Below, one piece after another: positions 6,360-40,900 of a DNA stretch of 64,000 nt; positions within the stretch are counted from its first letter, which is position 1; the number at the start of each line of letters is the position of its first letter. The translations under genes were made by a program, and so were the position numbers. Origin of the DNA: Hypanus sabinus (lineage: Eukaryota); NCBI RefSeq assembly GCF_030144855.1, contig NC_082710.1, forward strand, positions 152,954,001-153,018,000, given 5' to 3'. The notes beneath the pieces are model-generated. The model saw nothing but the letters and a program-made list of their open reading frames with translations, did not search any database and was not told the origin of the DNA.

Positions 6360-6950
6360 TCCACATCCTTACATGAAGAGGTTTGGCTCCGCACCCTGCC
6401 TCTGCACATCCTGTACCTGGCCGGCTGTCTACCGCCCCACCTCCCTCCCTCCCTCTCTCCACACTCCGGAGCAGCGGCGGGGCTGTTTATTTCTGCAGGA
6501 AGATTTTTAATTACAGGAGTTCTTACTGGTTGTTCCTTGTAGAGAGCGCTATTTATCCCCGAATTGCCTCCGTGAATTTTAACTGCGCACTCAGCAGTTT
6601 ATTGGCAAACGAGTAGATTTGTCGAGGTGCGATGACACCGCAATGGAGAGTCGGAACGGACTGGGATCGCTCCTTTTCACCATACTGTCTCTCTGCGGGA
6701 AGCCAGGCTGGGAAGGCGAGGCTGTGTGATTGTTTTAAAGGACTGGGGTTGCGATTTGAAAACTCACCGCTAATCTCGAGAGATCCCAGGCTCTCCGTTG
6801 GAGATCCTCCATTAGACTGGAGAACTGCTACATCGCACTGATACAGAGGAAATCCAAGATGCTGGGGAATTTCTGGAGTCTATAAGTTCGGGATAAAATT
6901 ATCACTGAAAATGTTCAACTGGTCATTGAGATTTGTCGCGGATTCCAAAA
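6360..6950 (+). pseudogene. Decayed inverted paralogue of the class I-like promoter, leader exon and proximal intron 1
   Basis: ATG 6643 MESRNGLGSLLFTILSLC vs [18 protein letters not shown]; shared blocks ggtttggctccgc, gggaagccag, cattagac, atttctggagtc; 8-nt deletion and GT donor lost. Confidence 0.8.
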
Positions 6951-16419: not shown

Positions 16420-17200
16420 TAGACAATAGACAGTAGATGCAGGAGTAGGCCATTCAGCCCTTCTGGCCAGCACCGCCATTCACTGTGATCATGGCTGATC
16501 ATACACAATCAATACCCTGTTCCTGCCCTCTCCCCATATCTCTTGACCCTGCTATCTATAAGAGCTCTATCTAACTCTCAAAGGGTGAGTGGAGAGGGTG
16601 CAGTGGAGATTTACCAGGATGCTGCCTGGATTAGTGAGTATGTCTTATGAGGATAGGTTCATTGAGCTAGGGCTTTTCTCTTTAGAGTAAAGGAGGATGA
16701 GAGGTGACTTGATAGAGATGTACAGGATGATAAAAGGCATAAGAAAAATAGGTTGAGTGGATAACCAGAGTTTTTCCCATGGTAGAAATGGCTAATATGA
16801 GTGAGAACAATTTCAAGATGATTAGAAGAGACTATAGTGGGATGTCAGAGGTAAGTATTTTTTTTTTACATAGAGAGTGGTGCATTAAATACTTGACATT
16901 TCTAGTCTGTAGAAAAAACTGACTATCCCATCTCTGCGTATCTCTCAGGATTATATAGATCTCTACCAGGTCTGCCCTCAACCTCCAATGCTCCAGAGAA
17001 AACAACATGAGTTTGCCCAACTATACAACAGAGAAAGTAACCATGTTTATTCCATTGTGTAATCCTCATATTTTGTACTCACTCATTCTCCAAATTGCCA
17101 AAAAATTCCAGAGTTTCTGCTCATATTATAAACTAAATGTTGGACACTGCCAATCTCCCTTGAAGAAAAGAATTACTCTTGGGTGTCCAGTGTTCAAAAC
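16420..17200. mobile_element. Nested CR1 3' fragments, both strands
   Basis: tagacaatagacaataga tail and agtaggccattcagccc; LFSLEHWRLRADLVE motif. Confidence 0.7.
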
Positions 17201-18124: not shown

Positions 18125-18157
18125 TCACAACTGTGGTTGAGAGAGCCAAATGCTCAC
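18125..18157 (-). CDS. Probable terminal cytoplasmic exon [10 protein letters not shown]
   Basis: Strong polypyrimidine acceptor ctcttctcttttctcctttgcAG; phase 0 matches the TM exon end; the intervening intron is 81 nt once the solo LTR and one TSD copy are removed. Confidence 0.55.
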   Translation of the reverse strand: MSIWLSQPQL

Positions 18158-21100
18158 CTGCAAAGGAGAAAAGAGAAGAGATTGAATTACAGTATAATAC
18201 TGTGGTGAACCACATATACCTGTCTGGACACACCCCCTGCTGACTGCTCCTGTGGCTCCTCCCACAGACCCCTGTATAAAGGCGATAGAGGACTGAGCCC
18301 AGCCTCTCAGTCTCCAGGATATAGTATGGTGGTCACTCACTGCTTGTTCCTTCTTCCAGTCAATAAAAGCCCATATCTCGCCTTTACGTCTCAGAGTGAG
18401 TTGTTGATGGTGCATCAAATACTGTAGCAGGTTTAACAAAGATAAACAATGTTTACCCACCTCCAGTGATATCTTGGTTCTCTGCTTGCTGCACCTCTAC
18501 ATCACTCCAAAGATTATCGCAAACACAGTCATCAGCCCCAACATGGGACCTGCACAATGGGGCACACCAACTCCTGTCCACCAAGTAAAGATCGGTAAAT
18601 TTATAAATGATTTTATTATTGTTACCAGTTACCAGTTACAGTGGAAATACTTGTTTTGCATTCTGTCCAAACAGATCATTACATCAGGATATTAATTTTG
18701 TGCAAGGGAAAACAATAACAGAATGTAGAGGAAAGTATTACTTTTACAGAGGATGTGTGGTGCTGGCTGGCAATAAGATGCAAGACCATTAAAAGTTAAA
18801 CTGTGAGGTCAGATGCCCATTTTACTATGTTTGGAGTGACTCAGTTTTCTCAAAGGAGCATGACAGAAGTATTCATTGATCATAGCAGTACATGCTTTCA
18901 GGCTTTTGTATCGTTTTCCTGATGGGAGCTGGGAGAAGCGGAGGGTGGGGAGGTGTGGGGCGGATGGTGATCCTGGGTGGGTGGTATCTTATATATTGGA
19001 TGATAGGAGAATGGAAGGTGTTTTGAAGAAGGAAGGTAATGTCATTCGGATGGAAAGGATGGAGAGGAGATTCACAAGGAGTGGAATGCTTGAGATACAA
19101 GGAGAGACAGTGTAGGCAGGTACTATTCCGCCCCCCCCCCCCCCCAGAGTGTAGGAGGCTGAGTTATACAAAGAGGTATATACAAGATAGAGTGCACAAT
19201 AATTTTTCAGGGCTCCTGGTGGTATGGGTTTAAGTTAAGAGAGAAAAGATGTAACAGGAACCTGAGGGGCAACATTTTCACCCATAAGGTGGTCATTTTA
19301 TGGGTGCCAGAAGAAGTGGTTGAGGCAGATAAGTTAACATCTTTTTAAAGATACATCCACATGTAGATGGATCTTAAGAGTTTAGGGAGATATGGGCCAG
19401 GATATATGGGACTTTCTTGAACAGGAGTCTTGATCACCAAAGATGTGCTGGGCTGAAGGGTTTGTTTCTCTGCTGCTGAATTCTACAAATCTATGACAAT
19501 CAAACACTCAACAGCCAGGCAGTGACCACTTGACAGTCAGGTCTTCCCCACAGTCCCAATTGTTTCTTAGTTGTTCTTTCTGTTGAGTTCCTATTGTATT
19601 TCTTTGACCAACAGCTCAACAGCTTCTGTAACAGCTGCTGAGCAGAAGGAACAGATTTAACTCATGTGGTAAAAGAGCATAGTAAATAATAACTTCCAAA
19701 TTGGAAATGGGATATGTTCTTGGAATTAAGAAAATTTCAATGGTGTGTGAGAAGGAGTGGGGCTACTTGCGCAATTCTTCCAAAGTAGGGAATAGGGTGG
19801 TGAAGATAGCCTACAGGATGCTGGATTTCATTGATCAGGGCATAGAATTCAAGAGAAGGGAACTAATAGTGTAGCTTCATGGTGGAGATCCTTGATTAGG
19901 TCTTTCAAAGAGTTAAATAGGGTGGTGAAGGAAGTGTACAAGATAACAATTATCAGTGCTTCGAATACAAGAGCACAGAAATTATGGTACAGCTTTATAA
20001 AACATTGGTGAGGCTACATTCTGAGTATTGTTTACAGTTCTTGTCACCAGAGGAGAGGTAAGATGTGATTGAATTAGACAGAGTGCAGAGGAGATTCATC
20101 AGAATGTGGCTCAGATGGATTGGGAAGAGAAAATGGATACACTGGGTTTGTTTTCCTTAGATGGGAGGAGACTGAGGGTGGACCTGATGGAGTTATACAA
20201 AATTATTAGGGTTGTGGATAGGAAACACATAGAAACTGTTGGAAGAATTTTTTAAAATATATATTAATTCTGTTTTGCAGTATTTTAAAAACAGTTATAT
20301 ATATATATACACACACTAGTTGATTTACTTACTTATTTTATATTTCTTCCTTCTATATTATCATGCATTGTATTGTTCTGCTGCTGCTAAGTTAACAGAT
20401 TTCACAACACTTGCCAGTGACAATAAACCTAATTTTAATTCTGAAGAACGCTATAGGTTTTGCTTGCTGCAGTTTATGCTTCCATTTCATGTGTTTGCTT
20501 GAGCTGTAGTAAACTTTTCCCCATAGTAAATTTGCCTATAACTCGAGGTAGGTTTAAGTTGATGACCCTTAGAAGTTCATAGGGAATCTACAAAATGAAT
20601 GCTTTCAGCAAGGGGGTGTTGGAGTTGGGAAAGGACTGCCTGAGGAGATGGTGGAGGCAGAGACCCTCATAATTTTCAAGATGTATCTAGATGAGCACTT
20701 GAATCATCAAGTTACAGAAGGGGACGGGTTGTGCTTTTGAGAACAGAGGGTTTGCATTAATCAGGTAGGCTGAAGAGCCTCCTTCTCTGCTGCATGAGCC
20801 ACCACAGGCAGAATGAAGCAAATTCTGTACCATACAATGACCTACCTCCCTTCACCACCAGTTCCTGTGTCAGGCTGCTGTGCTCGACGCGACAGGCATA
20901 GATGTTTGGGTTGTTGCCCTGCAGCTCAATGACTAGTTCCATCCAGTACGTATCATTGAAGTTCGGTAGCACAGTCACCTTGTAGCCCTCAGAAACAACC
21001 TGCCCATTCTTCAGCCACATAGCGTTGATAGCACGGGGGTAGAAGGGAGTGATGATGCATGAGAGACTCTCGCCTGCAGTAGCTGTTGGCCTCCTTGTCA

Positions 21101-24100
21101 ACACCTGAGCCTCTGGAGCAACTGTTGAAGAATTAAAGATTATGTCACCATCTCAACACAGGCTGATGTTACTTTACTGTTACAGGCTGAAGTTACAGTG
21201 TTCAATGTTGGGATTACTCTCACATCTGTCACTGCCTCAGAACGTGATCTGTCTCACTACAACACTCACTATCTGATCTGAAATCAGCCTCCACAGCCTA
21301 AGCTCATGCAGGCGACAGACAGAGATTACGTTCATTCATCTAACAGGTCCAGATTGAGGTCACAAGCACTGTTCCCAATACAACTGTCATGCAATATCCC
21401 AAATTAAGATCATCCTCAAACTGCAAGATGGAGAATGTCCTCAGCACAGCAGTGGTGATGAGAAGGTCTCTCACTGCCCCACACACTGCTCCAGATCAGG
21501 ACATCAGTCAATGTCTTGATTTGGGTGTGCCCTCAATTAAAGATTCAAAGTACATTAATTATCAAAGTGTGTATAAAGAATACAACACTGAGATTTATCC
21601 TCCAATGCAGCAAAGAAACAACGAGACACCAACGAACCACTTCAAAGAAAACATCAAACACCAAACATGCAGAGAGAACAAATTGCACAAACAGTGAAGT
21701 GAGCTAGCAACACGTGGAATATCAAACATCTGAGCAGGAGTACATTTGTTCTTAATTGTCCATTCCTCATCTGTTAGTGCATAATAGTGAGAATGAGACC
21801 AGGGGCAGTGTCTTGTACTGTGTACTGTGTGAGAGATGTGAGAATTCTGGGAGACATCCAGTCTCTCAGATAAACACATCTGCACCAGGTGTGTCAAGCT
21901 GCAGCTCCTCAGAGAATGTGTCAAGGAACTGGACCTGCAGCTCAATGACTTTAGCTTCATATGGGAGAAAGAGGAAGAGATAGATAGGAGCTGCAAGGAA
22001 GTAGTCACCCTAGGATGAAGGAGATAGATAAATTGGTGACTGTCAGAAAAAGGAGGGGAAATGCACAGCCAGTGCAGAACACACCTGCAGTTATTTCCCT
22101 CAAAATAAGTGTACCACTTCAGATACTGTTGAGGGGGACAACCAACCGGGGGTAACCACAGAGTCCAGGTCTCTGGCACTGAGTCTGGTGTTGTGGCTCA
22201 GAAGAGCAGAGAGGTGAAGAAGACTGCGGTGTTGATAGGAGATTACATTGTCAGAAGAACAGAGACAAGATTCTATGGGCACGATGGAGACAGCCGGATG
22301 GTATGTTGCCTCCCAGTTGCCTGGATCACAGATGTCTCAGATCAGGTCCATTGCATTTTCTGGAGGGAGGGTGAGCAGCCAGAAATCTTGGTGCATAGTG
22401 GTGCCAATGACACGGGTGGAGAAGTTGAAGAGGTCCTCAAGAGAGATTTTAGGGAGCTGTGTAGAAAGCTGTAAAACAGGACCTCCAAGGTAGTAATCAC
22501 TGGATTTCTGCCCATGCCACACACCAGTGAGGGGAAGAATAGTATGATTTGGCAGGTGTATGTGTGGCCAAGGAATTAGTGGAGACAGCAGGGGTTCTCT
22601 TCTGGGTATGACCTGTACAAAAGGGACAGGTTACACTTGAACCCAAGGGGGCCCAATATCCTTGCATGCAGGTTTTCTAGAGTTGTTCAGGAGGATTAAA
22701 CTAATTTGACTGTCCCGAGCCATCAGGGGGGCAAAATGTGCACATGCCCAGCTAATCCACAGTTACTTCCAGGACACCTGTGACACAAGGCACATGTGGA
22801 AGGGCATCCAGGACAACACCATTTACAAGACAACATCACCTGACTGTGCGGGTGATGCATCCCTGCCAAATGTGCTGAATAACTTCTATGCCCGGATTGA
22901 GGTGGAAAATGACATGGCGGCGAGGAAGTCCACCCCTCCTACAAATGACCAGGTGCTGTGTCTCTCCGTGGATGTCGTGAGAAGAACCCTGTGCTGATGG
23001 ACCAGACAACATCCCTGGTAGAGTGCTCAGAGGATGTGCAGACCAGCTAGCAGATGTTCTCACTGACATCTTCAACATCGCCCTGAGCAGCGCCACCATT
23101 CCAACGTGCTTCAAGGCCGCCACCATTGTCCCCATGCCGAAGAAGTCTTCAGAGTCCTGCCTAAATGACTATTGTCCCGTTGCACTTACATCCATCATCA
23201 TGAAGTGTTTCAAGAGGCTCGTCATGAGGCATATCAAGACCCTGCTGCCCCCCTCACTGGACCCCCTGCAGTTTGCGTACCGTCCCAACTGCTCAACAGA
23301 TGATGTCATTGCCATCACCCTCCACCTGGCCCTAACCCACCTGGACAAAAAAGACACATACGTTTGGATGCTGTTCATAGACTTTAGTTCAGCATTCAAC
23401 ACAATCATCCCTCAGAAACTGACTGGAAAGCTGAGTCTACTGGGCCTGAACACCTCCCTCTGCAACTGGATCCTAGACTTCCTGACTGTGAGATCTCAGT
23501 CAGTCTGGATCGGGAGCAGCATCTCCAACACCATCACACTGAGCACGGGGGCTCCCCAGGGTTGCGTGCTCAGTCCACTGCTGTTCACTCTGCTGACCCA
23601 CGACTGTGCTGCAACAGACAGCTCGAAACATATCATCAAGTTCGCCGATGACACCACCGTGGTGCGTCTCATCAGCAAGTACGACGAGTCAGCTTACAGA
23701 GAGGAGGTGTAGCAGCTAACGGACTGGTGCAGAGCCAACAAACTGTCTCTTAATGTGAACAAAACAAAAGAGATGGTTGTTGACTTCAGGAGGGCACGGA
23801 GCGACCACTCCCTGATGAACATTGATGGCTCCTCGGTAGAGATTGTAAACAGCACCATATTTCTTGGTGTTCACCTAATGGAGAATCTCACCTGGTCCCT
23901 CAACACCAGCTCCATAGCAAAGAAATCCCAGCAGTGTCTCTACTTTTTGCGAAGGCTGAGGAAAGTCCATCTCCCACCCTCCATCCACATCACATTCTAC
24001 AGGCGTTGTATTGAGAGCATCCTGAGCAACTGCATCACTGCCTTGTTCAGAAATTGGACCATCTCGGATCGCAAGACCCTGCAGCCGTCAGCTGAGAAGA

Positions 24101-27100
24101 TCATTGGGTCTCTCTTCCCGCCATCACAGATGTTTACACTACACGCTGCATCTGCAAAGGAAACAGCATTATGAAGGACCCCATGCACCCCTCATACAAT
24201 CTCTTCTCCCTCCTGCTGTCTGGGAAAAGGCTCCGAAGCATTTGGGCTCTTACAACCAGACTATATAACAGTTTCTTCCCCCAAGCTATCAGAGTCCTCA
24301 ATACCCGCAGCCTTGACTGACACCTTGCCCTACTGTCCTGTTTATTATTTATTGTAATGTCTGCACTGTTTTTGTGCACTTTATGCAGTCCACTGTAGGT
24401 TTGTAGTATAGCTTTCTCTGTTATTTTTATTACCTAGTTCAGTCTAGTTTTTTGTACTGTCATGTAAACCATGGTCCTGAAAAACGTTGTCTCATTTTTA
24501 CTATGCACTGTACCAGCAGTTATGGTTGAAATGACAATAAAAGTTGACTTGACTTGACTTGAAGAAGGAAAAGATGGAATATAAAAGTAAGCAAGATAAT
24601 AATAAAGAGGATACAATAAGTTTCTATGGATAAAGTGTAAAAGTGAGGTGAGGTTGGATTTTGGACAACTGTAAAGTGATGCAGGAGAAGTAGTAACTGG
24701 GGACAATGAAATAGTGGATGAAATGAGGAAGACACTAGCAGTATGCTGGAAGCTTGGCAGTGTCAGGGGAGCAGGTATGTGTAAAGTTGCAATTACTAGA
24801 CAGATGTTTCTTGGGAAAATGAAAGGTCTTAATGTGACCTGGACAGATGGTGCAGATGCCAGGGTTCTGCAACAGGTGGCTGAAAAGATTATTGAGGCAT
24901 TAGTAATGATCTTTCAAGAATCTTTAGATTCTGGAATTGTTGCAAAAGATTGGAAAATTGCAAATATCACTCTACTCTTCAAGCAGGGAGAGACACACAG
25001 AAGAAAGGAAATTATAAGCCAGTTAGTCTGACCTCAGTTGTTGGGAAGATTTTGGAGCTGATTGTTCAAGATGGGGTTTTGGGGTACTTGGAGGCACATG
25101 ATAAAATAGGTCGTAGTGGACATAGTCTCCTCAAGGGAAGATCTGTTGGAATTATTTGAAAAAATAACAAGCTGGATAGACAAAGGAGGAGCAGTGAATG
25201 TTGTGTATTTGGATTTTCAGAAGGCCTTTGACAAGGTGTGACAGAGGTAGAACAAGGAAAGAGGTTCTATTGAGGGAATTTGAGGACTAAATTAAAAAAG
25301 CAGAACAAATAAGGTGGGAATCTCTGGATTACTACTGAGCCACGAGCAAATTGGCATAGGGTTTAGAAGATTAGAGAGTAAAGTGTGTGGCTGAAGGATT
25401 GGTGTGGGGGAAGTAGGTTTGAATTCATGAGAAATTGGCACCAGTATTGGAGAAGGAGGGAGCCATATCAATGGGACAAGCTCCACCTGAACTGTGATGG
25501 GACCTGGACCCTAGTGAATCACATAACCAGGGCTCTGCATAGGGATTTAAATTAAATAGTAAGGGGTGGGTTTAGTAGGGGGAAAGGGTTCAACAGATTA
25601 TACAAGTATATATAAAGTAAAAGAGAAAAGTATAGATAAAGACAATGAAAAATCAAAAGATAAAATAAGAATGGAGTAAAGAAAAGTCAAGTCCAAAAGA
25701 GAAAAAGATTACAAGATTTTAAAAGCACAATGAGGGTAGGGGCACGTTATCTGAATGCCCGTAGTATTCAAAATGAGGTCTGTGAACTTTTGACACAAAT
25801 CAGTACAAAGGGGTATGATTTCATGGGCATTACAGAATTGTGGTTGCAGGGTGGAGAGGATTGGGAAGTAAATATCCAAGGATATCAGGTAATACAGAAG
25901 GATAGGCAAGAAGGTAAGGGAGGTGGAGTAGCACTCTTAATTGTGGATCAGATCAGGGTGATAGTGAAAGATGCTGTAAGATCTAATGAGCAGAATTTTG
26001 AATCCAACTGGGTAGAGTTTAGGAATAGAAAATGGAAAAAAAATCACTGGTGGAAGTTGTCTATCGACCACTGAAATATAACATTACAGTGGCACAGGCA
26101 ATAAACAGACAAATATCTGTGGCATGTAAGAATGGAACAGCAGTTATCGTGGTGGTTTTTAAGTTGCGTATAGATTGGGTGAATCAAGATGATGGAGGCA
26201 GTATTAAGGATGACTTCATAGAATGCATCCATGATGGCTTTCTTGAACAGCATGTTAATAAACCTACAAGGGAACATGCTATCTTAGATCTGATCATGTG
26301 CAATGATCAGGTAAAATTAGTGATCTTGTAGATAGGGATCCTCTTGGAAAAAGTGATCACAGTATGATTGAGTTTCTCATACAAATGGTGGGTGTAATAG
26401 TTCAATCGAAAATAAGTGTTTTATGTTTAAACAATGGAGACTACAATGGAATGGGGGAGGATTTGGCTTGCGTAGACTGGGAACACAGATCATATTGTGG
26501 GAGGGTTGAGAAGCAGTGGAAGACTTTCAAAGAGATTTTTCACGGTGTTCAACAAGAGTATATTCCAGTCAAAAGTGGGAAGTAAGTAATTAAGTAAGGG
26601 TGGGGAGAGCCAGCCTTGGATAACTATGGAAATGAAAGAAGGCATCAAACTAAAAGCTTGTTTGTACAAATTTGCCAAGAGTACTGGGAAACTGGAAGAT
26701 TGGGAAAACCTTAAAAAGCAACAAAGAACGACTAAGCGAGCAATAAAGGAATGGAAGACAGATTATGAAACTAAACTAGCACAAAATACAAGAAAGGATT
26801 GTAAAAGTTGTTATAATTATATAAAGCAGAAAAGGTGGCTTAAGTGAACGTAGGTCCCTTGGAGGACAAAAAGGGGAATTAATATTGGGTAATGAGGAAA
26901 TGGCAGAGGCTTTAGATCTATGTTGTGTCGGTCTTCACAATGGAGGTGGAGGACACGTCTAACGTGCCAAAGACAGATGTTATGGATGCGCTGGGAGGTG
27001 AGAACCCTGATACAATAGGAATCACTGAAGAGGTGGTGCTGAGCGTACTTGTGGGCCCGAAGATAGATAAGTCCCAGGGTACTGAAAGAAATGGCAGAAG

Positions 27101-30100
27101 TTATAGTAGAGGCTTTGGTGATAATTTACCAAAAATGAACAATAGAGTTGGGGGTAATGTATTAGCATGGATAGAGGATTGGTTGACTAATAGAGAGAAG
27201 AGAGTTAGGAGAACTGGGTGTTACTCTGGTTGTCAATCAGTAGTGAGTGATGAGCTGCAGGAGTCTGTGCTGGGCTTGCGACTGTTCACGATATACATTA
27301 ATGATCTGGAAGAGAGGACGAGTGTAGTGTGTCTAAGTTTATGTACGGTGTGGAAGCATCCTGAAATTTGTCAATAAGGTCTAAGCAGGAACTCCTGACT
27401 CCTGAAAACTGCTGAATTGCATGTATTTTAAGGTATAAAAGACCATACTTGTGCTTACTTTAGCAGTCTTTTCATGGGCTCTCTTTGGTCATGTAATTAA
27501 ATAATTCAACTGAATACTGGGGTCTGTGTCTTTGTTTAATCAGCGATAGTAAGTTTCTGTGACACTCAGTGTAGAGGGGCTTCGTTTTAAAATGGAGATC
27601 AGGAAGTATTTCTTCAGCCAGAGAGCAGTACATCTGTGGAATTCATTGCCACAGGCAACTTGGCAGCTGCGGAGGTCACACCTTTAGGTATATTTAAAGC
27701 AGAGATTGATAGGTTCTTTAGGGTCACGACATGAAGTGATACGGGGAGAAGGCAGGACATTGGAGGTATGAGGGATAATGGACCAGCATGATGACATGGT
27801 GGAGCAGACTTGATGGGCCCGTTCTGCTTCTATATCTTACGGTTTTATCGAGTCTAGATGTATTCAGTTTAGTTCAGTGCCTTGCTACAAGTCAAATGCA
27901 AGGCACAGAATCAATGTTCGCTGAAGCGCCCAGTGCACGCTGATTCACCTCGATCAAACTGCTCATAAGCAGCAATACCTGAAACACATGAATCCTAAAG
28001 TTCCCCAAAATGAGTCACAACCACAAGCCTCACTGATCAATCCCTGCAATGTGGAACACAAGCCTCCTGCACTTTCCTCCAACCGCAGCTCGTAAAAGGG
28101 CAAGGAATACCAGCCAAACACAGCAGATGGCGCCAAACACCAGCTTGGCCTCCGCCCCCGGCCTCGTCCACTTCAACCTTGCTCAACGCCTCAGTCAGAG
28201 AGAAGCAACAGAGCCAATCATGGGCTCACAGTCCTCCTCCAGGCCTGCAAGCCGTACACTCCAATGAACTCACTGTTTCAAATTAGGAGATCCCTCAATA
28301 CACCAGGGTGGGAAACCCCTAAGCATTTTGTTTTGGGAGCTCCCCCTCTTTCCCATATCAGGGGATCCCTTTGCATCTCCAATTGGGAGCTTCCTTACTG
28401 TCCAGATCAGGAGATCCATCAAATCCTTCAGTATCTCGAATCATGACAGCCTACACCATCTCTGTCTCAGAGCCCCATAATCGTCTCAGACTGAGATATC
28501 TCTTATGTCGCTGAATTGGGAGTTCCCTCACCATCACAGAATGTTCCACTTGCCTTGCCTTTCAGATGCTTCTTTTCCAAGCTGAACAGCTCTTTGCAAG
28601 TACCGAATGCAGTAAATCTTCATTTCACGCTCTTCATTGAAAGTGAGTTGGGTCATTTGAGAATTGATCAATTCTATGAGATTTTTCTCTGCGCTGATAT
28701 CACAGCTGACCGTTCCAAAATCTGGGATGTTGACTTTTAGAATCACATTGATCGTATTTCCAGAATGTGTGCAGCCCAAGATTCCCTGTATGTAGCTGAT
28801 GTCTGTAAAGTACCAACAGATTAATTAACATTCATGGCTGAAGCTTCCAACATTAAATCTGATATCCATCTGGATACTGGCCTGCTAAATACATAAATGC
28901 TGCAAGGGGTGATTGATAAGTTTGTGGCCTAAGGTAGAAGGAGTCAATTTTAGAAAACCTAGCACATTTATTTTTCAACATAATCCCCCCCCCCCCTTCA
29001 TTAACGCACTTAGTCCAGAGGATGTGGAGCATATGGATCGTAGACCTCCAGGAAGTGTCCACGCAGGGGTGATTGATAAATTTGTGGCCTCGGGTAGAGG
29101 AAATGCGTTATACAGCTCTAGTTACATGCATATGCAGTTCAGCTCTTTGAGTGATTATGCAGAAAGTTTGAAGTTAATAACTCGTCAGGGGTGATTGATA
29201 AGTTTGTAGCCTAATGTGGAAGGAGATATTGAAAAATAAATGTGCTAGGTTTTCTAAAATTGACTGCTTCAACCTTAGGCCACAAACCTATCAATCACCC
29301 CTCGTACGTGACAAAGAGGTGCACAAAATAGTGGGTCACAGTGAGGGACTGTGTACAGTTAAGGCTGAGATCATGGGGTGACAGTGTACCATATAGGATG
29401 TTTGTCACTGTGCGGCACAGATCACAGGGTCTTGAGGAATCACTAATCAATGTGAGCAACTGTCTACATGGCAGGGTGGGAGGGGAAAGTTTAAAGAGAT
29501 TAATTTGTTATCAAAGAATGGCAACGTTTTTAAATGTACAGTGAAAAGCATTCGGATTGGTTACATCACAGCTGGTAGGTAAACGCTAAAGCCCTGAAAG
29601 ACAAAAGGCTGAGGGGGTGGTGGACTCAGTCAGTCCCATCACAGGTACAGCACTCCGCATCGTTCAGGACATCTGCTGAAGGCAATGTCCCAGGAAGACA
29701 ATGTCCATCATCTGGAACCGCACCCTTCATATCATCCAGGACAGACCCTCTTCTTGATGCTCCCACCAGGAAGGAGAGACAGGCCGAAGGACCCACACCT
29801 CAGGCTCCGACAAGAGCTCCATGTCCAACAGCACCAGGTTCTTTAACCAACCAGAAAAGCCTTAACGTGACCCGAGATTATATTCTTTCCTCTCTTAACC
29901 TTGGACAAATATTGTTACATTAATTTTGTTGTATATCTTTGCAAATGTGCAGGTTGTGTATATTTATTTAAAATTGACTCCATGCTAACACGTCCTGTAA
30001 TAAAGACTTCTGCTGCTGCAAAACAGTAATTTTATGGCATTTGTACCCTGTGTATGTAAGCCTATGATCAGAAATAAACTTGAGCTCGTATTTATGCAGA

Positions 30101-33100
30101 GTGCACAGTACAGAGATCACATTGAAACAGTGTGCATACAAAGCAGGGGGCATATCGAAGGACTCTGTCAATATGTGGGACAGAGCAGGAGCTCGGTGAG
30201 AATCTGCACTGTGCAGTCTGTGTTGAACCATGTCCACTGCAGAGTTACGGTGGAGAATTGTGAAAGCAACGTGTTTGTATTCAGTGTCAATAAGCACAGA
30301 GTGTGCACCACAGCAGGTCTGGTCGCTCTGTGATGGTGAGGATTTCGAGAAGGTGCAGAAGATGCTTACCAGATGCTGCCTGCATTGGACAGCATGTGCT
30401 ATAACAAGAGATTGGACCAGCTTGGGCTGCTTTCAGTCGACATCTGTATCATTTTTCCCTCAGCTGAAATGTCTAATACAAGAGGGTATGTTCAATAGAG
30501 ATGTGCAGGGTCAGTCTTTTACAGAGTGGCCCATTCCTAAATTGTGCTAAATTGTGGTGGAAGTAGCAGATACAAAGAGGGTGTTCAAGAAGCTCAGTTG
30601 AGCAGGAAATAGGAGTACATGGACATTGTGTATGCAGAAAGGATTAGCTTAGTTTGGCATTTGATTATTAATATAATTAGTTCAGCAGAACTTTGTGGGC
30701 CAAAGGGCCTATTCCTGTGCTGTTGTGTTCTATGTTCTAATGCACGGAGTCCCAGCACCGAATCAGATCTGGAAAGCGTCACTGTGGCAGGTGACTAGGT
30801 AAGCCATGGACATCTTAGTTCCAAACCATTCGAGACTGAAGCATTCCCAAGTCTGCTGTTGGGGTCAAGTTTAGGATTGGGGTCAGAGCCAGGGCAAATC
30901 CTGTGTGGACAGTGGGTTTGATGTTCACTATTTCTCTGAATAGGTCAGTGGGGAATGAGGACTGGATAATCAGTTTACATTTAAGGGTCAGAACTTACCC
31001 AGATGATTAGGATGGAATTCTTCTAATTGGAGTTAAGGAAGGTAGAGAGCAGAATGGAGATTTGAGAGATTTGAAAAGGTGAAGGACTTTAAACTTGACA
31101 CAACAAAATCGGATCCAAGAGAAGGTCAAGATATTGACAATATGCAAGTCACTATGATACTCAAGGGGCGGTGGAGATCAAAGACACTCACTAATGTGTG
31201 GGGTGATTGGCATCAGACATGCGGAGAGGAGCCCATGAAGCCTGTCAGTTATTTCTTTCTGTTCTTTCTGGTAGTCAGTCGATAAGCCATCTGCAATCCA
31301 CTGATGCTTGATTTCTACTTCACGGAGGGTGCTGTCATAGTAGTCAATCTGCAAGTCATCCAACATCCCAATCCTGAAGAAGGCTGGCAGTTCAGTAATG
31401 TTGATGGATTGGAAGTAGAAATACATCAAGCCGTGTGAGCCTGAGTAAAATGAGAGAGAGAGAGAAAGAGAGGGAAGTGTTAGGAAACAACAAAGGATGC
31501 TCACAATTTCTAAGGCATAACTCGGGAGTTTGATAACATACTCACCACTTGAATGGATTAATACACATCCAAGCAGACATCCGACCGGATCAGGCAGCAC
31601 ACCCACCCCCCCCCCCCCCACTTTATTAGCTCCCCAAACATGAGCAACTAAAACATGCCTCACTGCTCTGGCTGTTTTCAAACTCCTAAGCAGGTACTCA
31701 CCGAAGCCAATCCAACAGAATAACCCATATCCCAGCACAAAGGAGGTCAAGGGCAGCAGGCAAACAGGAACCCCAACTCCCACTATAGGGTTGCTTCTAA
31801 TTCAGAGGCAAACATACTGGAATATGTGTCCGCCATGATAGAGAGGAAGCCAAGGTTCGAGGAGAAGCAAAAGAAATTTCTGGGGCACCAGTGTAGAAAT
31901 TCTCATCATCACAGCAAAGGTGACAGAGAAAGAGGACAGAAAATTCGTTGTGGAGACCCACAAGAGGCAGAGTGGGAGGATTAAAAGTAAAGATAGTTGT
32001 GTGACTCTGTAGGTTGAAACAGACATTTGTGAGCACAGTGAGGGTAGGAAACCCTTAGCTATGCCCTGTATGAAGAGGAGAACAGGCTAGGAATTGGGAG
32101 CAAGGAAAACGACAATTTCCAGTTCTGTGTGAGTGCAGGGAGCAGCACCAATACAGTGATCAATGTAAAAGGAAAGGAGCTGAGTGAGGGAGCCCAAATG
32201 GGATTGAAACTTAGCACTCATTTCAAGAGGACTAGAATATAAAAGCAAAGGTGTAATGTTCGACTTCATAAAGCACTGGTGAGGCCTCACTTGGAGTATT
32301 GTGAGCAGTTTTGGGCCCCTTATCTTAGAAAGATGTGCTGAAACTGGAGAGGGTTCAAAGAAGGTTCATTAAAATGATTCTAGGATTGAAAGGTTTGTCA
32401 CCTAAAGAGCATTTGATGGTTCTAGGCCTGTATTCACTAGAATTCAGAAGAATGAGGTGGGACCTAATTGAAACCTGTCAAATGGTGAAAGCCTTTTATA
32501 GAGTGAATGTAGAGAGGATGTTTTCTATGGTGGGAGAGTCTAAGACCAGAGGACACAGTCTCTGAATAGAGGGTTGTCCTTTTAGAGCAGAGATAAGGGG
32601 AAACTTTTTTTAGCCATAGAGTGGTGAATCTGTGGGATCCTTTGTCACAGGCAACTTAGCAGCAGTGGAGGCCAAGCCATTATGTATATTTAAGGCAGAG
32701 TTGATAGATTCTTGATTGGTCAGGACATGAAGGGATACAGGGAGAAGGCAACATATTGGAGCCAAGAGTAAAATTGGATGTAATGGACATGATGAAATAG
32801 CAGAGCAGACTTGATGGACCACATGGACCATTCTGCTCCTATATCTTATGGTCTTATGGTACAAGACTTTCACAGGTATCCAAGTGCAGAAGAGATTTTC
32901 CAGAATGCTTCCTGGATTGGAGGACATACGAATTGAATTGAATTAAATTGAATTGACTTTATTACTTACATCCTTCATATACAAGAGGAGTAAAAATCTT
33001 TATGTCTCCATTCAAATGTGCAATGTACAATTATAGAAATTTATAATAAATATTATGTAGAACAGCATAGTCAATATAACATAGAACTTCAGTGTCTCTG

Positions 33101-36100
33101 CATGAACTAAGCAGTTTGATGGTCTGGTGAAGAAGCTGTCCCAGAGCCTGTTTGTCCTGGCTCTCATGCTGCGGTATCATTTCCCAGATGATAGCAGCTG
33201 GAACAGTTTGTGGTTCAGGTGAGTCGGGTCTCCAAGGATCTTTTGGACCCATTTTACACACCTGTCCTTCTAAATATCCTGAATAGTGGGAAGATCACAT
33301 CTACAGATGTGCTGGGCTGTCTGCACCACTCTCTGCAGAGTCCTGTGATTAAAGGATGTACAGTTCCCATACCAGGCAGTGATGCAGCCAGTCAGGATGC
33401 TCTCAATCGTGCCCCTATGGAAAGTCTCAGCCCATTGAGACTTTTCTACATTCCATCATGGCTGAATCCAAAACCCACTCAACCCCATACGCCTGTATTT
33501 TTGTCATATCTGACCATCAGGAAATGATTAACTTCCGCTTTAAATATATGCACAGACTTGAGAGTCTGTGGCAGAGCATTCCACAGATTTAAAGCTCTCT
33601 GGCTATATACATAAAAATATTCCTCCTTACCTCTGTTCTAAATGGCTACCCCTCAAATCTGATGCTGTGCCATCTAGTTCTGGATACTCTCACCGCAGGA
33701 AACATTCTCTCCACATCCACCCCAACAAGTCCTTTCAACATTCAGTAGGTTCTAATCAGATCACCCCACATTTTTCTAAACTCCAGTGAGTACCTGGGCA
33801 AGCTCCTCTCTCATGCCTCTGTAATTCCATTTATTCCATTGCGATACTGATACATGTGAGTTATGCTTCTCTCTCTTAAACTGCAGTATGAATTCAATCA
33901 TATTTTGATCACTGACTCCTAAGGAATGCTTTATGTTTAGCTCCCTAATAAGATCTGTGTTTTTGCAGCGTACCTGTAGATGTGAACTTCCCACTATTGA
34001 GGACGTTTACAAAGACGGGTGTGTAAAAAGGGCCCAAAGGGTCCTTAGGAAACTGAGGTACACCAACCACAAAATGTTCCATCTGCTACCATCTGGAAAA
34101 TTATACCACAACATAAAAGCCAGCCCCAAGGGGGACAGCTCCTTCCACTAGGCCATCAGACTGCTTAATTCATGCCTACACAACTGAATTTCTATGTTAT
34201 ATTGACTATCTTGTTGTACATTCTATTTATTATAAATTACTATGAATTACACATTGTACATTTAGTTGGAGATGTAATGTTACCATTATGAAGGATGTAA
34301 TTAATAAAGTCAATTCAATTCAATTCAATTCAATACACATCACCCAATCTATGATAGCCTTTCCCTGAGTAGGCTCAAGCACAAGTATTCTCTGACCCTA
34401 TGTCACCCTTTTCTAAAGATGTAATTCCAACTCTTACCAACAGAGTCACACCACTGCCTATGCCTTTTTGCCTGTCCTTTCAATACAAAGTATATCCCTT
34501 GACGTTAAGCTCCCAACTTCGGCCTTTTCTCAGCCACAGCTTCGTGATCCCCACAATGTCATTGAGACCAATCTTTAATTGCGGCACGGGTTCATCCACC
34601 TTATTCCAAATACAGCACCTTCAGTGCTGCGTTCTTCACCCTTTTGAATTTTGCCTCTGTAGTACAATTTAACTCTTTGCTATGTCTGTATTTGTACCCA
34701 ATCATTGTCTTGTCCTTTTTACATTCATGTTACACCAATCATCTTCTTGCAAACCTGCTGGCTCATCCTCAGCTCTATCGTCCTGGTTTCCATCCCCCTG
34801 CCATATTCATTTCAACCACTCCCAACAGCTCTAGTAAATTTGGCCACAAGAATATTGGTCCCTCTTGGATTGAAATGCAACGTGCCCTTTTTCAACTGTT
34901 GCAAGTTTCCATCTTGGCCCTTAAACATTAGTTCTGTTTCTCTGTACTTGCATGCTATCGGAACTGCGGAGCTTTCCATCTTGAACTTGAAACATTAACA
35001 GTTCCTCTTTCCCCCAGATACTGGCCTGTTGACTATTGTCAGAACTTTTTCTTTCTATTTTCAAAGTGCATCAAGAGTTGGCTCTAAGTTTTTGGTGATT
35101 GCTGTGGTCATAGACTGAGAGAACATCGATGCATGTTATGTACAACGACTTCTGGGAGGTTTGATAAAAGGCCCCTCTCAAGTGAATGGCCAGGTTAACA
35201 CCGCTCATGGCGAATGATGCAGCAGGAAGTGGAGGCAATTGGCACTGGACATGAGTGCCGAGTTCATCAAAGCTCTGGTGTTGGGGCGGTTGGTCAGTAT
35301 GTTTACACATGGCAGATTATGGGAGATTTCTGTGCCTGCACTGGCTGCTTACAGAAAATACATTTGAAAAGGAAGCAGAAGAAATAGGAGCAATATATCA
35401 CGAAGAACAATATTGCTCAGTTTCTGTTACCTTAGGTAGCAGGGAATTTAGGATGTTCAGGGAGATTTTAGGTCACGTTCAGTCAAATTTATTCCCATAT
35501 GCATAAGAATGGCTAGATATAGATAAAATGAAAATCTTGCTTGCAACAGCATTACAAGCAGGCATATTCAGGGAACACACAGAATGTCAATATGCAAAGT
35601 TTTTGCAAGTCAATGAACAAAAATATCTGCAGATTGAGACATCAGAGCAAATAAAACAAAATAAAACAAAGCATCTGTTGAGAGACAAACAATAAGTGTT
35701 TCAGATTGGGGAGCCTGAGTCAGAACTTGGAACGAGAGAAATCAAGTTAGTTTTTGTTAGCAGAGAAGTCATTCACACATACGGCACAGAAAGAGGACAC
35801 TCGGACTGCTATATGTGTGCAGATCCTTGAGGAATGGGTAGAACAGGAGTATTTCTCTGGTATTGTGAAATAGACTGATATAACGTGGAAGTTAAGGGAT
35901 AGTTAAACTCATATTAAGTACTTTAATGTGATGCCTCTATTAAGATTGTGGGTCTTTCCACTTTGGGAACTGGCGACAATTCCTACCCAGTGGTGAAACA
36001 TATTCAAGGATCATTTTGCCCCGAGTTTATCGACTCCAGAAATGTCGCAAGAGTGAAATAGAACACAGGAGTGCGATGAGTTCGTCTTCCCGTCTAATGC

Positions 36101-36261
36101 AGCCACAGCCAGGAACTCTGAAAGATTTAAAGGTGAGTTTCCCGACACAACCCCCGACCATCGCCGTCACATACCCTCGCCTCACCTGTCTGGCTTCCCG
36201 CGACAGAGCAGAGAGAGAACGCGGTGACAAGGAGCGACACCGGTCCGGTCCAACTCTCCAT
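18125..36261 (-). CDS. Spliced nonclassical MHC class I-like heavy-chain gene (leader/alpha1/alpha2/alpha3/TM/cyt); 300 aa to an in-frame TAG in the TM exon, 323 aa if that codon were sense
   Basis: Six exons with AG acceptors and GT/GC donors; junction phases 1,1,1,1,0 join in frame; domain order and motifs match class I heavy chains; lineage cannot be assigned without a search. Confidence 0.9.
18201..18417 (+). mobile_element. Solo LTR (217 bp) with 5-bp TSD AATAC, inside intron 5 and antisense to the class I-like gene
   Basis: TGTGGTG...CATCA termini; AATAC at 18196-18200 and 18418-18422; internal TATAAA and AATAAA. Confidence 0.9.
18461..18549 (-). CDS. Exon: transmembrane segment [29 protein letters not shown], with in-frame TAG at 18499-18497
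   Basis: tgcAG acceptor and GAG|GTGGGT donor; the phase-1 frame gives a hydrophobic run followed by basic residues. Confidence 0.7.
18950..20250 (+). mobile_element. CR1 ORF2/3' fragments
   Basis: Repeated CR1 RT C-terminal phrases (tataaaacattggtgaggctacattctgagtattg...). Confidence 0.65.
20846..21121 (-). CDS. Exon: MHC class I alpha3 Ig C1-set domain (92 aa)
   Basis: 276 nt, phase 1-1; [25 protein letters not shown] motifs; acceptor ttcttcaacAG, donor GAG|GTAGGT. Confidence 0.95.
21790..22710 (+). mobile_element. CR1 ORF1 remnant (zinc finger plus SGNH esterase)
   Basis: [10 protein letters not shown]...RMVCCLP...[10 protein letters not shown] (22193..22474). Confidence 0.8.
22720..24561 (+). 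mobile_element. Rex1/Babar-type LINE, 5'-truncated, RT frame nearly intact
   Basis: RT ORF 23023..23712 ([16 protein letters not shown]) continues in the same frame past one TAG to 24174; tail aataaaag(TTGAC)n. Confidence 0.9.
24560..27850 (+). mobile_element. CR1 ORF2 fragments (APE endonuclease and RT) and 3' end
   Basis: YLNARSIQN...ITELWL (25730..26074), [18 protein letters not shown]. Confidence 0.8.
27345..27564 (+). mobile_element. LTR-like fragment interrupting CR1
   Basis: TATAAAA box, ATTAAA-like signal, ends ...TGTGACA; no TSD recognised. Confidence 0.35.
28554..28802 (-). CDS. Exon: MHC class I alpha2 domain (83 aa, shortened)
   Basis: Acceptor gtactttacAG; YIQGILGC...[15 protein letters not shown] with the two canonical Cys 54 residues apart; donor AAG|GCAAGT (GC-AG), phase 1. 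Confidence 0.88.
28901..29306. mobile_element. Tc1/mariner-type MITE with about 75-bp TIRs and two extra internal TIR-start copies
   Basis: aggggtgattgataagtttgtggcctaagg...ttttcaa mirrored at about 29229-29306 ending cccctcgTA; partial copies at about 29061 and 29186. Confidence 0.85.
29450..30030 (+). mobile_element. Rex1/Babar or L2-type LINE 3' fragment
   Basis: catccaggacagaccctcttcttgatgctcccaccaggaagg..., tail gtaataaagacttctg. Confidence 0.5.
30330..30740 (+). mobile_element. CR1 3' end
   Basis: Ends gggcctattcctgtgctgttgtgttctatgttcta. Confidence 0.7.
31192..31440 (-). CDS. Exon: MHC class I alpha1 domain (83 aa)
   Basis: Acceptor ctctcattttactcAG; [10 protein letters not shown]...[14 protein letters not shown]...QWI...DY motifs; donor TTA|GTGAGT, phase 1; lies in ORF 31178..31783. 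Confidence 0.92.
32050..32860 (+). mobile_element. CR1 3' portion
   Basis: KLERVQRRF...[11 protein letters not shown] (32335..32565); ends ctcctatatcttatggtcttatgg. Confidence 0.8.
32920..35000. mobile_element. Nested Rex1/Babar (32920-33420 minus; 33960-34335 plus) and CR1 (minus) fragments
   Basis: (AATTG)n and (CAATT)n tails; CR1 endonuclease-region phrases on the minus strand. Confidence 0.6.
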
Positions 36262-36700
36262 TGCGACGACTCCTCGCATCGACTGAACCCTGATCGTTAG
36301 TCAGTAAAGTGCTGAGGGTGGAGTTAGACTCACAGACGCGGCTTGGGGTAAACAGGGTAATCTACAGGTGCAGCCAGTAACTGAAAATCCTTCTAGAGAA
36401 ATGGACTGTGGGCGCTGCGGAGAGTCGACTGATCGCGGGAGGGAGCGGAGCCAAACCACTTCCAGTATTGCATCAAATCCGACGAGCGGAGATTTCAGGA
36501 ACCTCCTAAAAGCCCGAGCTAAGCTGCTCAGCACAAACCTTCACCAGTCACTGGGTAAAACAAAACTTCTAGAGGAATTCGGCGGGCCAGGCGGCAGATG
36601 TGATGGGAAATACAGGTGTCGACACAAAATACCCACTGTCCCTATAAATTCTCAGCTGCGGCCAGACACGCTGATTCATAGTCAGACTTCATAAAACAGG
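35950..36700 (-). promoter_or_regulatory. CpG-rich promoter/5' region of the class I-like gene
   Basis: Local CpG enrichment against a CpG-poor background, spanning the leader exon; partly conserved in the copy at 6360-6950. Confidence 0.6.
36186..36261 (-). CDS. Exon: signal peptide [25 protein letters not shown](G)
   Basis: ATG in strong Kozak context (gcaATGG), hydrophobic core, donor CAG|GTGAGG in phase 1 matching the alpha1 exon; an in-frame upstream ATG at 36279 could add MRGVVA. Confidence 0.85.
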
Positions 36701-38640: not shown

Positions 38641-40900
38641 ACCATAGAACTATAAAACACTACAGCACAAAATTCCGGCCATTTGGCCCTTCTAGTATGT
38701 GCTGAATCTTTATTCCGCTTGTTCCATTGACCTGCATCCAGTCCATAACCCGACAGACCTCTACCGTCCAAGTACCTATCCAATTTATTCTTAAAACTTA
38801 AGAGTGAGCCTCCATTTACCATGTCAGATGGCAGCTCGTTCCACAATTCTACCACTCTCTGAGTGAAGAAATTCACCCTAATGTTCCCCCTAAATCTTTC
38901 CCCTTTCACCCTGAAGCTATGTCCTCTTGTATTTATCTCTCCTAACCTAAGTGGAAAGAGACTGTTCACGTTTACTCTGTCTATACCCCTCATAATTTTG
39001 TAAACCTCTATCAATTCTCACCTCATTCTTCTACATTCCACGGAATAAAGCCCTAACCTGTTCAATCTTTCCCTGTAACTCAACTCCTGAAGACCCCAGC
39101 AACATCCTCATAAATCTCTGCACTCTTTCAATCTTACTGATATCCTTCCTATAGTTCGGTGACCAGAAATTTGGCCTCACAAATGTTTTATACAACCTCC
39201 CCATAACATCCCAACTCCTATACTCAATACTTTGATTTATGAATGCCAGGATGCCAAAAGCTATCTTTTCAACCCTGTCTACCTGTGATGCCACTTTCAG
39301 GGAATTATGTATCTGATCTCCCAGATCTATTTGTTTCTTCACACTCCTCAGTGCCTGACCATTTACTGTGTATGTCCTACCTTGATTTGTCCTTCCAAAA
39401 TGCAACACCTCACACTTGTCTGCATTAAAATCCATATGCCTTTTTCTGGCCCATTTTTCCAGTTGGTCCAGATCCCTCTGCAAGCTTTGAAAGTCTTTCT
39501 CGCTGTCCACAAGGCCTCCAATCCTAGTGTCATCAGTAAACTTGTTGATCCAATTTACCACATTAGTATCTAGATCATTGATATAGACAACAAACAACAA
39601 AGGTCCCAGCACAGATCCTTGAGGCACACCACTAGTCACGGGCCTCCAGTCTGATAAGCAATCATCCACTATCAATCTCTGTCTTCTCCGACACAGTCAA
39701 TTTCAAATCAAGTTCCAACCTCTCCATGGATACCAAGTATCTGAATCTTCTGAACTAACCTCCCATGTGGGACCTTGTCAAAGGCCTTACTAAAGTCCAT
39801 GTGGACAACATCCACAGCATTTCCTTTGCCTGCTTTCTTGGTAACCTCCTTGAAAAACTCTACAAGATTCGTTAAACATGATGTACCATGCATGAAGCCA
39901 TGCTGACTATCCTTAATCAGCCCTTGGCTGTCCAAATACTTCTATACCCGATCTCTCAGAACACCTTCCAATATTTTACCTACTACTGATGCCAGGCTCA
40001 CTGGTCCGTAATTACCTGGTTTGCTTTTGGAGCCCTTTTTAAACAACAGAACAACATGAGCTGCCCTCCAATCCTCCTGCAGCACACCCATGGCTAAGGA
40101 CATTTTAAATATTTCTGCCAAGGCCCCTGCAAATTCTACACGAGTCTCCCTCAAGGTCCAGGGAAATATGTCAGGCACGGGAATTTATCTACCTTTGTTC
40201 GCTGTAAAGCAGCAAGTACCTCCTCCTCCTTAATCTCTATATGTTCCAAGACACTGCTGCTTGTTTCCCTTCCTTCCATATATGCTATGCGAGTTTCCTG
40301 AGTAAATACTGATGCAAAAAATTTGTTTAAGATCTCTCCCATCTTGTGAGGCTCCACAAAAAGATGACCACTTTGATCTTTTATGGGACCAATTTTGTCC
40401 CTTACTATCTTTTCACTCTTAATATACTTGTAGAAACCCTTCGGGTTTACCTTCACATTATCTGCCAAAGCAACCTCATGTCTTCTTTTTGCCTTCCTGA
40501 TTTCCTTCTTCAGTATTTTCTATACTCTTCAAGAACCTCATTTGTTCCTTGTTCCCTATACCTTCTTCACCAGATCGCCAAATTCCCTGGAAAACCAAGG
40601 TTCTTTCTGCTTGTTAACTTTGCCTTTAACCCTGGCAGGAACATGCATACTCTACACTCTCAAAATTTCACCCTTGAATGCTTTCTACATTCTGAACAAA
40701 TCCTTGCTGGAAAACATCTTATCCCAATCCACTCTTCCGAGATCCTTTCTCATTTTCTCAAAATTGTCCTTCTCCAATTTAGAAACGTAACTCGAGGACC
40801 AGACCTATCCTTATCCATAATTAACTTGAAACTAATGACATTATTATCACTGGACCCAAACTGTTTGCCTACACATACTTCTGTCATGCCACATTCTTAC
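38640..40900 (-). mobile_element. CR1 LINE, about 2.3 kb 3' part
   Basis: RT ORF 39031..39675 (SGVPQGSVLGP, KFTDDT), VHMDFSKAFDKVPH, tail ctatagttctatggt. Confidence 0.9.

Follow-up and report, generated by a model that had tools for sequence, protein, structure and literature searches.

We analysed a stretch of 64,000 nt from the Atlantic stingray Hypanus sabinus (RefSeq assembly GCF_030144855.1, contig NC_082710.1, positions 152,954,001 to 153,018,000 of the forward strand; hereafter, the window), which carries on its minus strand a gene in the class I family of major histocompatibility complex (MHC) genes. We observed that this gene is one of five genes of the nonclassical class I lineage UFA in H. 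sabinus. The exons were read directly, with lengths and splice sites scripted, and the resulting model has five coding exons whose junctions are all in phase 1 (Table 1). The spliced product was identical at 314 of 314 residues to the H. sabinus RefSeq protein XP_059826636.1 (working label P0181), to which RefSeq gives the generic label 'MR1-like'. The RefSeq annotation, made independently, thus agrees with our model in all five coding exons, in the GC donor and in the stop.

Table 1. Features of the UFA-lineage gene, in coordinates of the window.
Feature	Position	Strand	Remarks
Exon 1, start codon and signal peptide	36186..36279	-	GT donor, phase 1
Alpha1 exon, 249 nt, 83 amino acids	31192..31440	-	AG acceptor, GT donor; UFA motif including QWIAD...DY
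Alpha2 exon, 249 nt, 83 amino acids	28554..28802	-	AG acceptor, GC donor gcaagt at 28553-28548
Alpha3 exon, 276 nt, Ig C1-set domain	20846..21121	-	Pfam C1-set E 3.7e-13
Exon 5, coding part: connecting peptide GVGVPHCAG, 16-residue hydrophobic C-terminus, TAG at 18499-18497	18497..18573	-	
Exon 5, remainder past the TAG: 12 codons, then GT donor	18461..18496	-	homologous stretch and donor in sawfish
Putative sixth exon, 10 codons then TGA	18125..18157	-	in phase, downstream of the TAG stop

The initial annotation of this locus, made by reading the sequence, had described six in-phase exons beginning at an ATG at 36261. Neither the start nor the exon count was borne out. RefSeq begins at an in-frame ATG at 36279, 18 nt upstream of that codon, and translation ends at the TAG in exon 5, right behind the hydrophobic segment. 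The sixth exon (18157-18125) lies beyond this TAG and therefore cannot code. Of the two start codons, sawfish and manta conserve that at 36261. In tblastn comparisons, the leader was 100% identical to that of P0002 and 94% to that of P0001, two members of the stingray clade described below, and RefSeq also predicts a leaderless isoform, X2. The annotated lengths of the two groove exons were correct, their boundaries being matched by XP_059826636.1, and so was the alpha2 Cys-Cys spacing of 54 (cysteines at domain positions 11, 34 and 65), as compared with 63 in the outgroups. Pfam MHC_I scored 23.7 bits on the alpha1 exon alone and 24.0 bits on the whole protein, in the latter case over residues 32-126 only, with a gathering cut-off of 28.3 bits; the alpha2 exon alone gave zero Pfam matches.

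From its sequence, the remainder of exon 5 looks like a vestigial stop-transfer and cytoplasmic segment, and the sixth exon is probably a 3' untranslated exon descended from an ancestral cytoplasmic exon. Past the TAG, the old frame stays open for 22 more codons over the next splice junction (18461-18496 and 18125-18157, minus strand), and the DNA of 18461-18496 is ∼72% identical to that of sawfish; taken alone, so short an open stretch carries no significance, and it is probably just 3' untranslated sequence in slow decay.

We recruited the family of the gene with the open reading frame containing the alpha1 exon, which was searched against a collection of 5.8 billion proteins. This search returned ray proteins of ∼310 residues whose automatic NCBI names were all generic, 'MHC class I-related gene protein-like' in most cases. 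A family profile built on twelve members added proteins from skate, from the electric ray Narcine and from five sharks (one protein cluster per shark species; 248-378 bits). Profile scores ranged from 248 to 673 bits inside the lineage, compared with at most 101 bits outside it (teleost class I), and an exhaustive HMMER scan of 1.84 billion representatives gave the same score gap. The long top scorers of this latter scan were considered as closer relatives and dropped: these gene models, from teleosts and reptiles, each comprise several class I units, and their scores are sums over the units.

Three comparisons with solved structures pointed to the same relative. In a phmmer search of the PDB the stingray protein matched 8gm8_A at an E-value of 8.9e-51, far beyond chance, with the next best entry at 3e-27. 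The family profile matched 8gm8_A at 1e-67 and 9ch4_A at 6.7e-32, and the top Foldseek match of an AlphaFold2 model of the protein was again 8gm8 (TM 0.86). Entry 8GM8, released on 2024-11-27, is titled 'Crystal structure of shark nonclassical MHC CLASS I, UFA', and 9CH4, released on 2026-03-18, is the counterpart entry for UGA. The bamboo-shark protein P0025 matches 8gm8 at 2.5e-111, and therefore the shark branch of our tree represents UFA. In this maximum-likelihood tree, into which no labelled UAA, UBA, UDA or UEA sequences were entered, the stingray gene joined the UFA lineage with support of 100/100, sharks and batoids forming separate groups within it. UFA is single-copy in sharks.

The sawfish orthologues P0012, P0014 and P0015 lie on chr34 at 13.23-13.29 Mb, 140-200 kb from B2M (13.08 Mb) and BRD2. 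The gene table for this species labels P0012 and P0015 'MHC-Ib', leaves P0014 unlabelled and gives no lineage names. These labels could not exclude an identity with UEA; the question was settled by the PDB titles. Taken together with the selection estimates given below, the gene is almost certainly an intact member of the UFA lineage that is constrained in alpha1 and alpha3.

The name UFA was introduced, on unpublished data, for a new lineage 'very similar to CD1' that maps to the MHC-Ib cluster alongside UDA and UEA (Verissimo et al. 2023, PMC10751288). A 2025 review (PMC12562908) describes UFA and UGA as single- or low-copy and points, per personal communication, to a crystal structure and to mass spectrometry as suggesting that UFA binds lipids. 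In the accessible literature, in which UFA appears in two brief mentions, we found neither a primary UFA paper nor a paper citing 8GM8 or 9CH4. The earlier proposal of a poorly described chondrichthyan lineage is thus right as to sparse publication, although the lineage had already been named and its structure solved. The initial annotation also stated that a full-length match of high identity to a characterised lineage would end the novelty of the gene; the lineage is indeed characterised, but the identity to its solved member is only ∼36%.

We compared the stingray gene with other UFA proteins and, at the level of genomic DNA, with the sawfish gene at locus L001 (P0012). The alpha1 domain has 83 residues in 21 of the 24 UFA proteins, from shark to ray (the other three models have 73, 81 and 82), and 87-88 residues in six outgroups. 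In the sawfish gene, the alpha1 exon is likewise 249 nt long, the GC donor recurs and a TAG occupies the equivalent position, behind which come a vestigial tail-like stretch resembling that of the stingray and a donor site. The 249-nt alpha1 exon is therefore a UFA trait and no cut specific to the stingray gene. Of the earlier claim that both groove exons had been cut, the alpha1 part falls away, and the alpha2 part stands and is partly new. As the homologous splice sites, including the GC donor, occur in the sawfish gene, the shortness is not a splice-site artefact.

The GC donor that follows alpha2 (GCAAGT; 28548-28553 on the minus strand in Hypanus and about 17102-17107 in the sawfish locus) is present in both species, and this non-GT donor must therefore be old. 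RefSeq predicts alpha2-skipping isoforms of 231 residues for the paralogues P0004 and P0010; a weak GC donor might permit regulated exon skipping.

UFA proteins end 25-28 residues after alpha3, and the last 14-17 of these are hydrophobic, the exceptions being the Narcine and Scyliorhinus torazame models. The outgroups carry a basic tail behind a hydrophobic run of ∼23 residues. As the sawfish gene and UFA proteins from shark to ray stop at the same place, we take the TAG to be the normal stop of the lineage and no recent lesion, and a recently disabled allele was rejected on the same grounds. The TAG precedes a basic stretch, at the place where the outgroups have a juxtamembrane Trp, and this sequence context suggests an old TGG-to-TAG change.

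We examined by eye whether the tail-less C-terminus has the layout of a glycosylphosphatidylinositol (GPI) signal, for which we looked for small omega-site residues, a spacer of ∼8-10 residues and 10-20 hydrophobic residues ending the protein. The stingray protein has small residues, a spacer of ∼7-9 and 15-16 terminal hydrophobic residues, in the order KGGVG, then VPHCAGP, then the terminal hydrophobic stretch, and UFA proteins from sharks to rays have a C-terminus of this layout. On this layout we lean, by a narrow preference, towards a GPI-attachment signal rather than a stable transmembrane helix. We also regard pairing with beta2-microglobulin and surface expression as very probable.

The groove has lost most of the residues that anchor peptide termini in classical class I molecules. 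Among eight classical anchors, two are kept, Y7 (Y38 of the protein) and Y59 (Y88); at positions 84, 143, 146, 147, 159 and 171 the MAFFT alignment has H, I, Q, M, E and A, in this order. The initial annotation had listed T143 as a third retained anchor, which depends on gap placement, the MAFFT column holding I. It was right on the loss of K146, W147, Y159 and Y171, on YLQRA standing for WLxxY and on IPDFG at the position of YDGxDF, and its description of a nonclassical class I molecule with peptide-terminus anchors lost holds. We also asked how far peptide presentation, classical or near-classical, in a shorter groove could still be considered. The two retained tyrosines and the overall class I fold are compatible with it. 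The residues at 84, 146, 147, 159 and 171, the absence of a cytoplasmic tail, the 100/100 separation of the lineage from the other class I sequences of the tree and the nonclassical nature of its closest solved relative speak against it, and we regard peptide presentation as hardly tenable. The non-peptide ligand proposed by the initial annotation agrees with what is reported for the UFA lineage, and by that analogy may hold for the stingray protein as well. The mean hydropathy of alpha1-alpha2 was -0.36 to +0.10 in UFA and -0.53 to -0.87 in the outgroups, the stingray protein (-0.18) being within the UFA range.

The feature that sets the stingray gene apart is its alpha2 domain. This domain has 90-92 residues in sharks and skates, 89 in Narcine and 87 in sawfish, manta and one stingray gene; lengths of 79-83 were seen solely in one Hypanus/Hemitrygon clade (support 100/99). 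The clade consists of three orthologue pairs, namely the window gene with P0001, P0002 with P0003, and P0011 with P0005. Every UFA protein outside it has an extra pair of cysteines at alpha2 positions 34 and 41, and relative to the 87-residue form the members of the clade share a 12-nt deletion by which the second Cys of this Cys-x6-Cys hairpin (CTGT) is gone. The lost hairpin is UFA-specific and lay after the last strand of alpha2, ahead of its helix. As both genera carry intact orthologues in all the pairs, the deletion predates the Hypanus/Hemitrygon split. The Hemitrygon akajei orthologue of the window gene is intact and 93.6% identical, with differences at 2 of 83 residues in alpha1, 7 of 83 in alpha2 and 4 of 92 in alpha3.

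The cysteines of the clade were followed individually. The window gene and its orthologue retain Cys148; in the other two pairs it has been replaced, and these two pairs are without the canonical alpha2 disulfide partner. Cysteines 106 (alpha1), 148 (alpha2) and 296 (stalk) of the stingray protein have no evident partner. Cys106 and Cys148 co-occur only in the window gene and its Hemitrygon orthologue; a new Cys106-Cys148 disulfide was considered and dropped as unlikely on general class I geometry. Cys296, in the stalk (PHCAGP), recurs in several paralogues and could enable covalent dimers.

UFA copies rise from one in sharks to five in Hypanus. A second UFA sublineage (B), apparently single-copy, occurs in stingrays and mantas (P0200 and P0201 in Hypanus, P0018 in Hemitrygon and P0017 in Mobula); its proteins have an alpha2 of 90 residues with a fifth alpha2 cysteine and end in ...MIKVV or ...MTKVV. 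In RefSeq, the Hypanus sublineage-B gene has the accession numbers immediately before those of the window gene, an indication that the two are neighbours. Two 'uncharacterized proteins' of Mobula birostris, P0035 (654 residues) and P0202 (581 residues), score highly with the UFA profile and have multiple class I units; tandem genes may have been fused in annotation, or the proteins may truly be multi-unit. In the accessible literature, we found no description of a UFA expansion in stingrays, mantas and sawfish or of a clade with a hairpin-less, 83-residue alpha2. The UFA lineage is known, and what appears to be new is this expansion together with the Hypanus/Hemitrygon clade.

We next estimated selection on the separate domains as the ratio of nonsynonymous to synonymous substitution rates (dN/dS) relative to the sawfish gene. 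The values were 0.39 for alpha1 and 0.27 for alpha3, indicating purifying selection, and 0.98 for alpha2. These values bear on whether the gene is a decaying redundant duplicate whose odd alpha2 is simply damage. Such decay would account for an alpha2 dN/dS of ∼1, for the unpaired Cys148 and the extra cysteines at 106 and 296, for a Pfam MHC_I score below its cut-off and for the leaderless isoform X2. However, the 314-codon reading frame is complete, every splice site is intact and common to the sawfish gene, the Hemitrygon akajei orthologue and both other pairs of the clade are intact, alpha1 and alpha3 are under purifying selection and the UFA proteins we examined normally stop at this TAG. 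We thus consider decay quite improbable.

The reading we favour, to which we give a probability of about 0.6, is that the gene encodes a UFA paralogue displayed at the cell surface, probably through a GPI anchor, whose hydrophobic groove has been reshaped. By its sequence, the product comprises a signal peptide, an 83-residue alpha1, an 83-residue alpha2 and a C1-set alpha3, the presumed partner of beta2-microglobulin, followed by a short stalk and a 16-residue hydrophobic C-terminus that leaves no cytoplasmic tail. The 12-nt deletion took the UFA disulfide hairpin, and the adjoining alpha2 helix has grown more charged. The protein would display a hydrophobic, non-peptide ligand at the cell surface in a narrowed and reshaped groove to receptors of an innate-like T or natural killer (NK) type, with the fast-evolving alpha2 helix setting the specificity for ligand or receptor. 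That the ligand is still a lipid, as reported for UFA, we put at slightly short of an even chance.

Several observations weigh against this favoured reading. One is the alpha2 dN/dS of 0.98. Another is the alpha2 helix segment, which in the short clade has a hydropathy of -0.4 to -0.7 with 17-30% charged residues (30% in the window gene); in most shark, skate and electric-ray UFA proteins it has +0.2 to +0.6 with 5-19% charged residues, and two shark models lie near -0.2 with 22-24%. A third comes from the AlphaFold2 model, in which the overall pLDDT (the predicted local confidence score) is 81.8 and residues 141-170 fall to 46-62, compared with 89-92 in the 87-residue-alpha2 paralogue P0007, which was modelled on the same 80-sequence alignment and has an extra strand at 154-157 after its Cys loop. 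Cys148 has been left without its partner, and the claim of lipid binding by UFA itself goes back to a PDB title, unpublished data and a personal communication, cited in two papers. The charge, the dN/dS, the pLDDT and the unpaired Cys148 are as compatible with a lost pocket as with a reshaped one.

In a rival reading, the short-alpha2 clade has acquired a new function. Having lost the hairpin and some of the hydrophobic lining of alpha2, it would hold no lipid and serve as a closed-groove, GPI-anchored ligand for NK-type or innate T-cell receptors, in the manner of MIC, ULBP and RAE-1, and selection exerted by these receptors would be changing alpha2. The alpha2 helix segment of the clade is the most charged and least hydrophobic in the lineage, the dN/dS of 0.98 in alpha2 contrasts with 0.27-0.39 in the other domains, alpha2 accounts for 7 of the 13 ectodomain residues at which the Hemitrygon orthologue differs, and residues 141-170 are not confidently placed, unlike in the 87-residue paralogue. 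The loss of the canonical alpha2 disulfide partner in two of the three pairs and the expansion from one shark copy to five in Hypanus are also in line with such a role. On the other hand, the hydropathy of alpha1-alpha2 as a whole has not left the UFA range and alpha1, which forms half of any pocket, is nearly unchanged; the low pLDDT may in part reflect that just six sequences in the alignment carry the deletion, or only that, and a dN/dS near 1 fits relaxed constraint too. On balance we find a ligand-free role unlikely, though it is the chief rival. A more specific form, in which the three Hypanus/Hemitrygon genes, deprived of the hairpin and of much of the hydrophobic lining of alpha2, have turned from CD1-like lipid presenters into GPI-anchored ligands of innate receptors with a closed or tiny groove and an alpha2 under diversifying selection, appears to us a shade less likely still.

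A few further features of the window surround the gene. No second class I gene was found within the 64 kb. Reverse-transcriptase fragments (Pfam RVT_1) at 23023-23712 (plus strand) and at 39031-39675, 43537-44094 and 52838-53353 (minus strand) sit in the alpha2-alpha3 intron and beyond the gene, and retroelement remains make up most of the 18-kb gene. An orphan leader-like exon, MESRNGLGSLLFTILSLCGKPG..., at 6643-6708 on the plus strand has an internal deletion and lacks a GT donor. It resembles the leaders of sublineage-B UFA genes, with no class I exons after it on the plus strand. We rejected it as the first exon of the neighbouring sublineage-B gene, because its identity to the P0200 leader is just 72.7%.

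UFA is one of the two elasmobranch lineages cited for the view that CD1-type lipid presentation goes back as far as the jawed vertebrates themselves. Against the single- or low-copy picture in the literature, it has multiplied in stingrays, mantas and sawfish, with five genes in Hypanus, and a young clade has cut a disulfide-locked element from the ligand-binding domain while alpha1 and alpha3 are still constrained. The natural alpha2 forms of 92, 87 and 83 residues offer a series for testing which parts of the groove are needed for lipid binding. If UFA molecules are GPI-anchored, a lipid presenter would traffic without the endosomal sorting motif on which CD1 relies. If the clade has indeed switched to receptor ligands, it would represent an independent and datable conversion of a presenter inside one class Ib lineage. 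We expect these observations to be of moderate interest to comparative immunologists.

Among the known systems, the closest is shark UFA as crystallised in 8GM8. The stingray protein shares with it the 83-residue alpha1, the GMLDDLQ-YYDS-QW motif and the loss of the peptide anchors; shark UFA gene models are tail-less too, the crystallised chain ending within alpha3. At ∼36% identity, the stingray alpha2 is 7 residues shorter than that of 8GM8, with gaps of 1, 4 and 3, and unlike shark UFA it is without the Cys-x6-Cys hairpin and has a more charged alpha2 helix. The paralogues with an alpha2 of 87 residues in stingray, manta and sawfish (e.g. P0007, P0199 and P0012) are 65-82% identical and nearly the same in alpha1, alpha3 and the C-terminus, but they keep the four-cysteine alpha2, with the helix region modelled at a pLDDT of 89-92. 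Shark UGA (9CH4), the other elasmobranch class Ib lineage reported to be CD1-like, was the second PDB match by profile and the third by single sequence. It differs in forming a separate clade (P0048 and P0052 look UGA-like), in having an alpha1 of 87 and an alpha2 of 92 residues, and in a normal transmembrane segment with a cytoplasmic tail.

The analogy proposed with CD1 (e.g. CD1d) is that of a beta2-microglobulin-associated class I fold with a hydrophobic lipid groove, and NCBI calls the sublineage-B UFA proteins 'CD1d-like'. In sequence, however, the stingray protein shows no particular affinity to CD1. The CD1-type Pfam family MHC_I_3 had no match in it, and it scored 25.1 bits on P0018 and 17.7 bits on P0025 with a cut-off of 35. 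As the stingray protein ends at its hydrophobic segment, with no cytoplasmic residues, it has no CD1-like YXXZ endosomal sorting motif. Class I-like molecules held by a GPI anchor include mouse Qa-2, ULBP/RAET1 and RAE-1. With these the stingray protein shares small residues, a short spacer, a terminal hydrophobic stretch and the absence of cytoplasmic residues, which would suit an anchor of the same kind.

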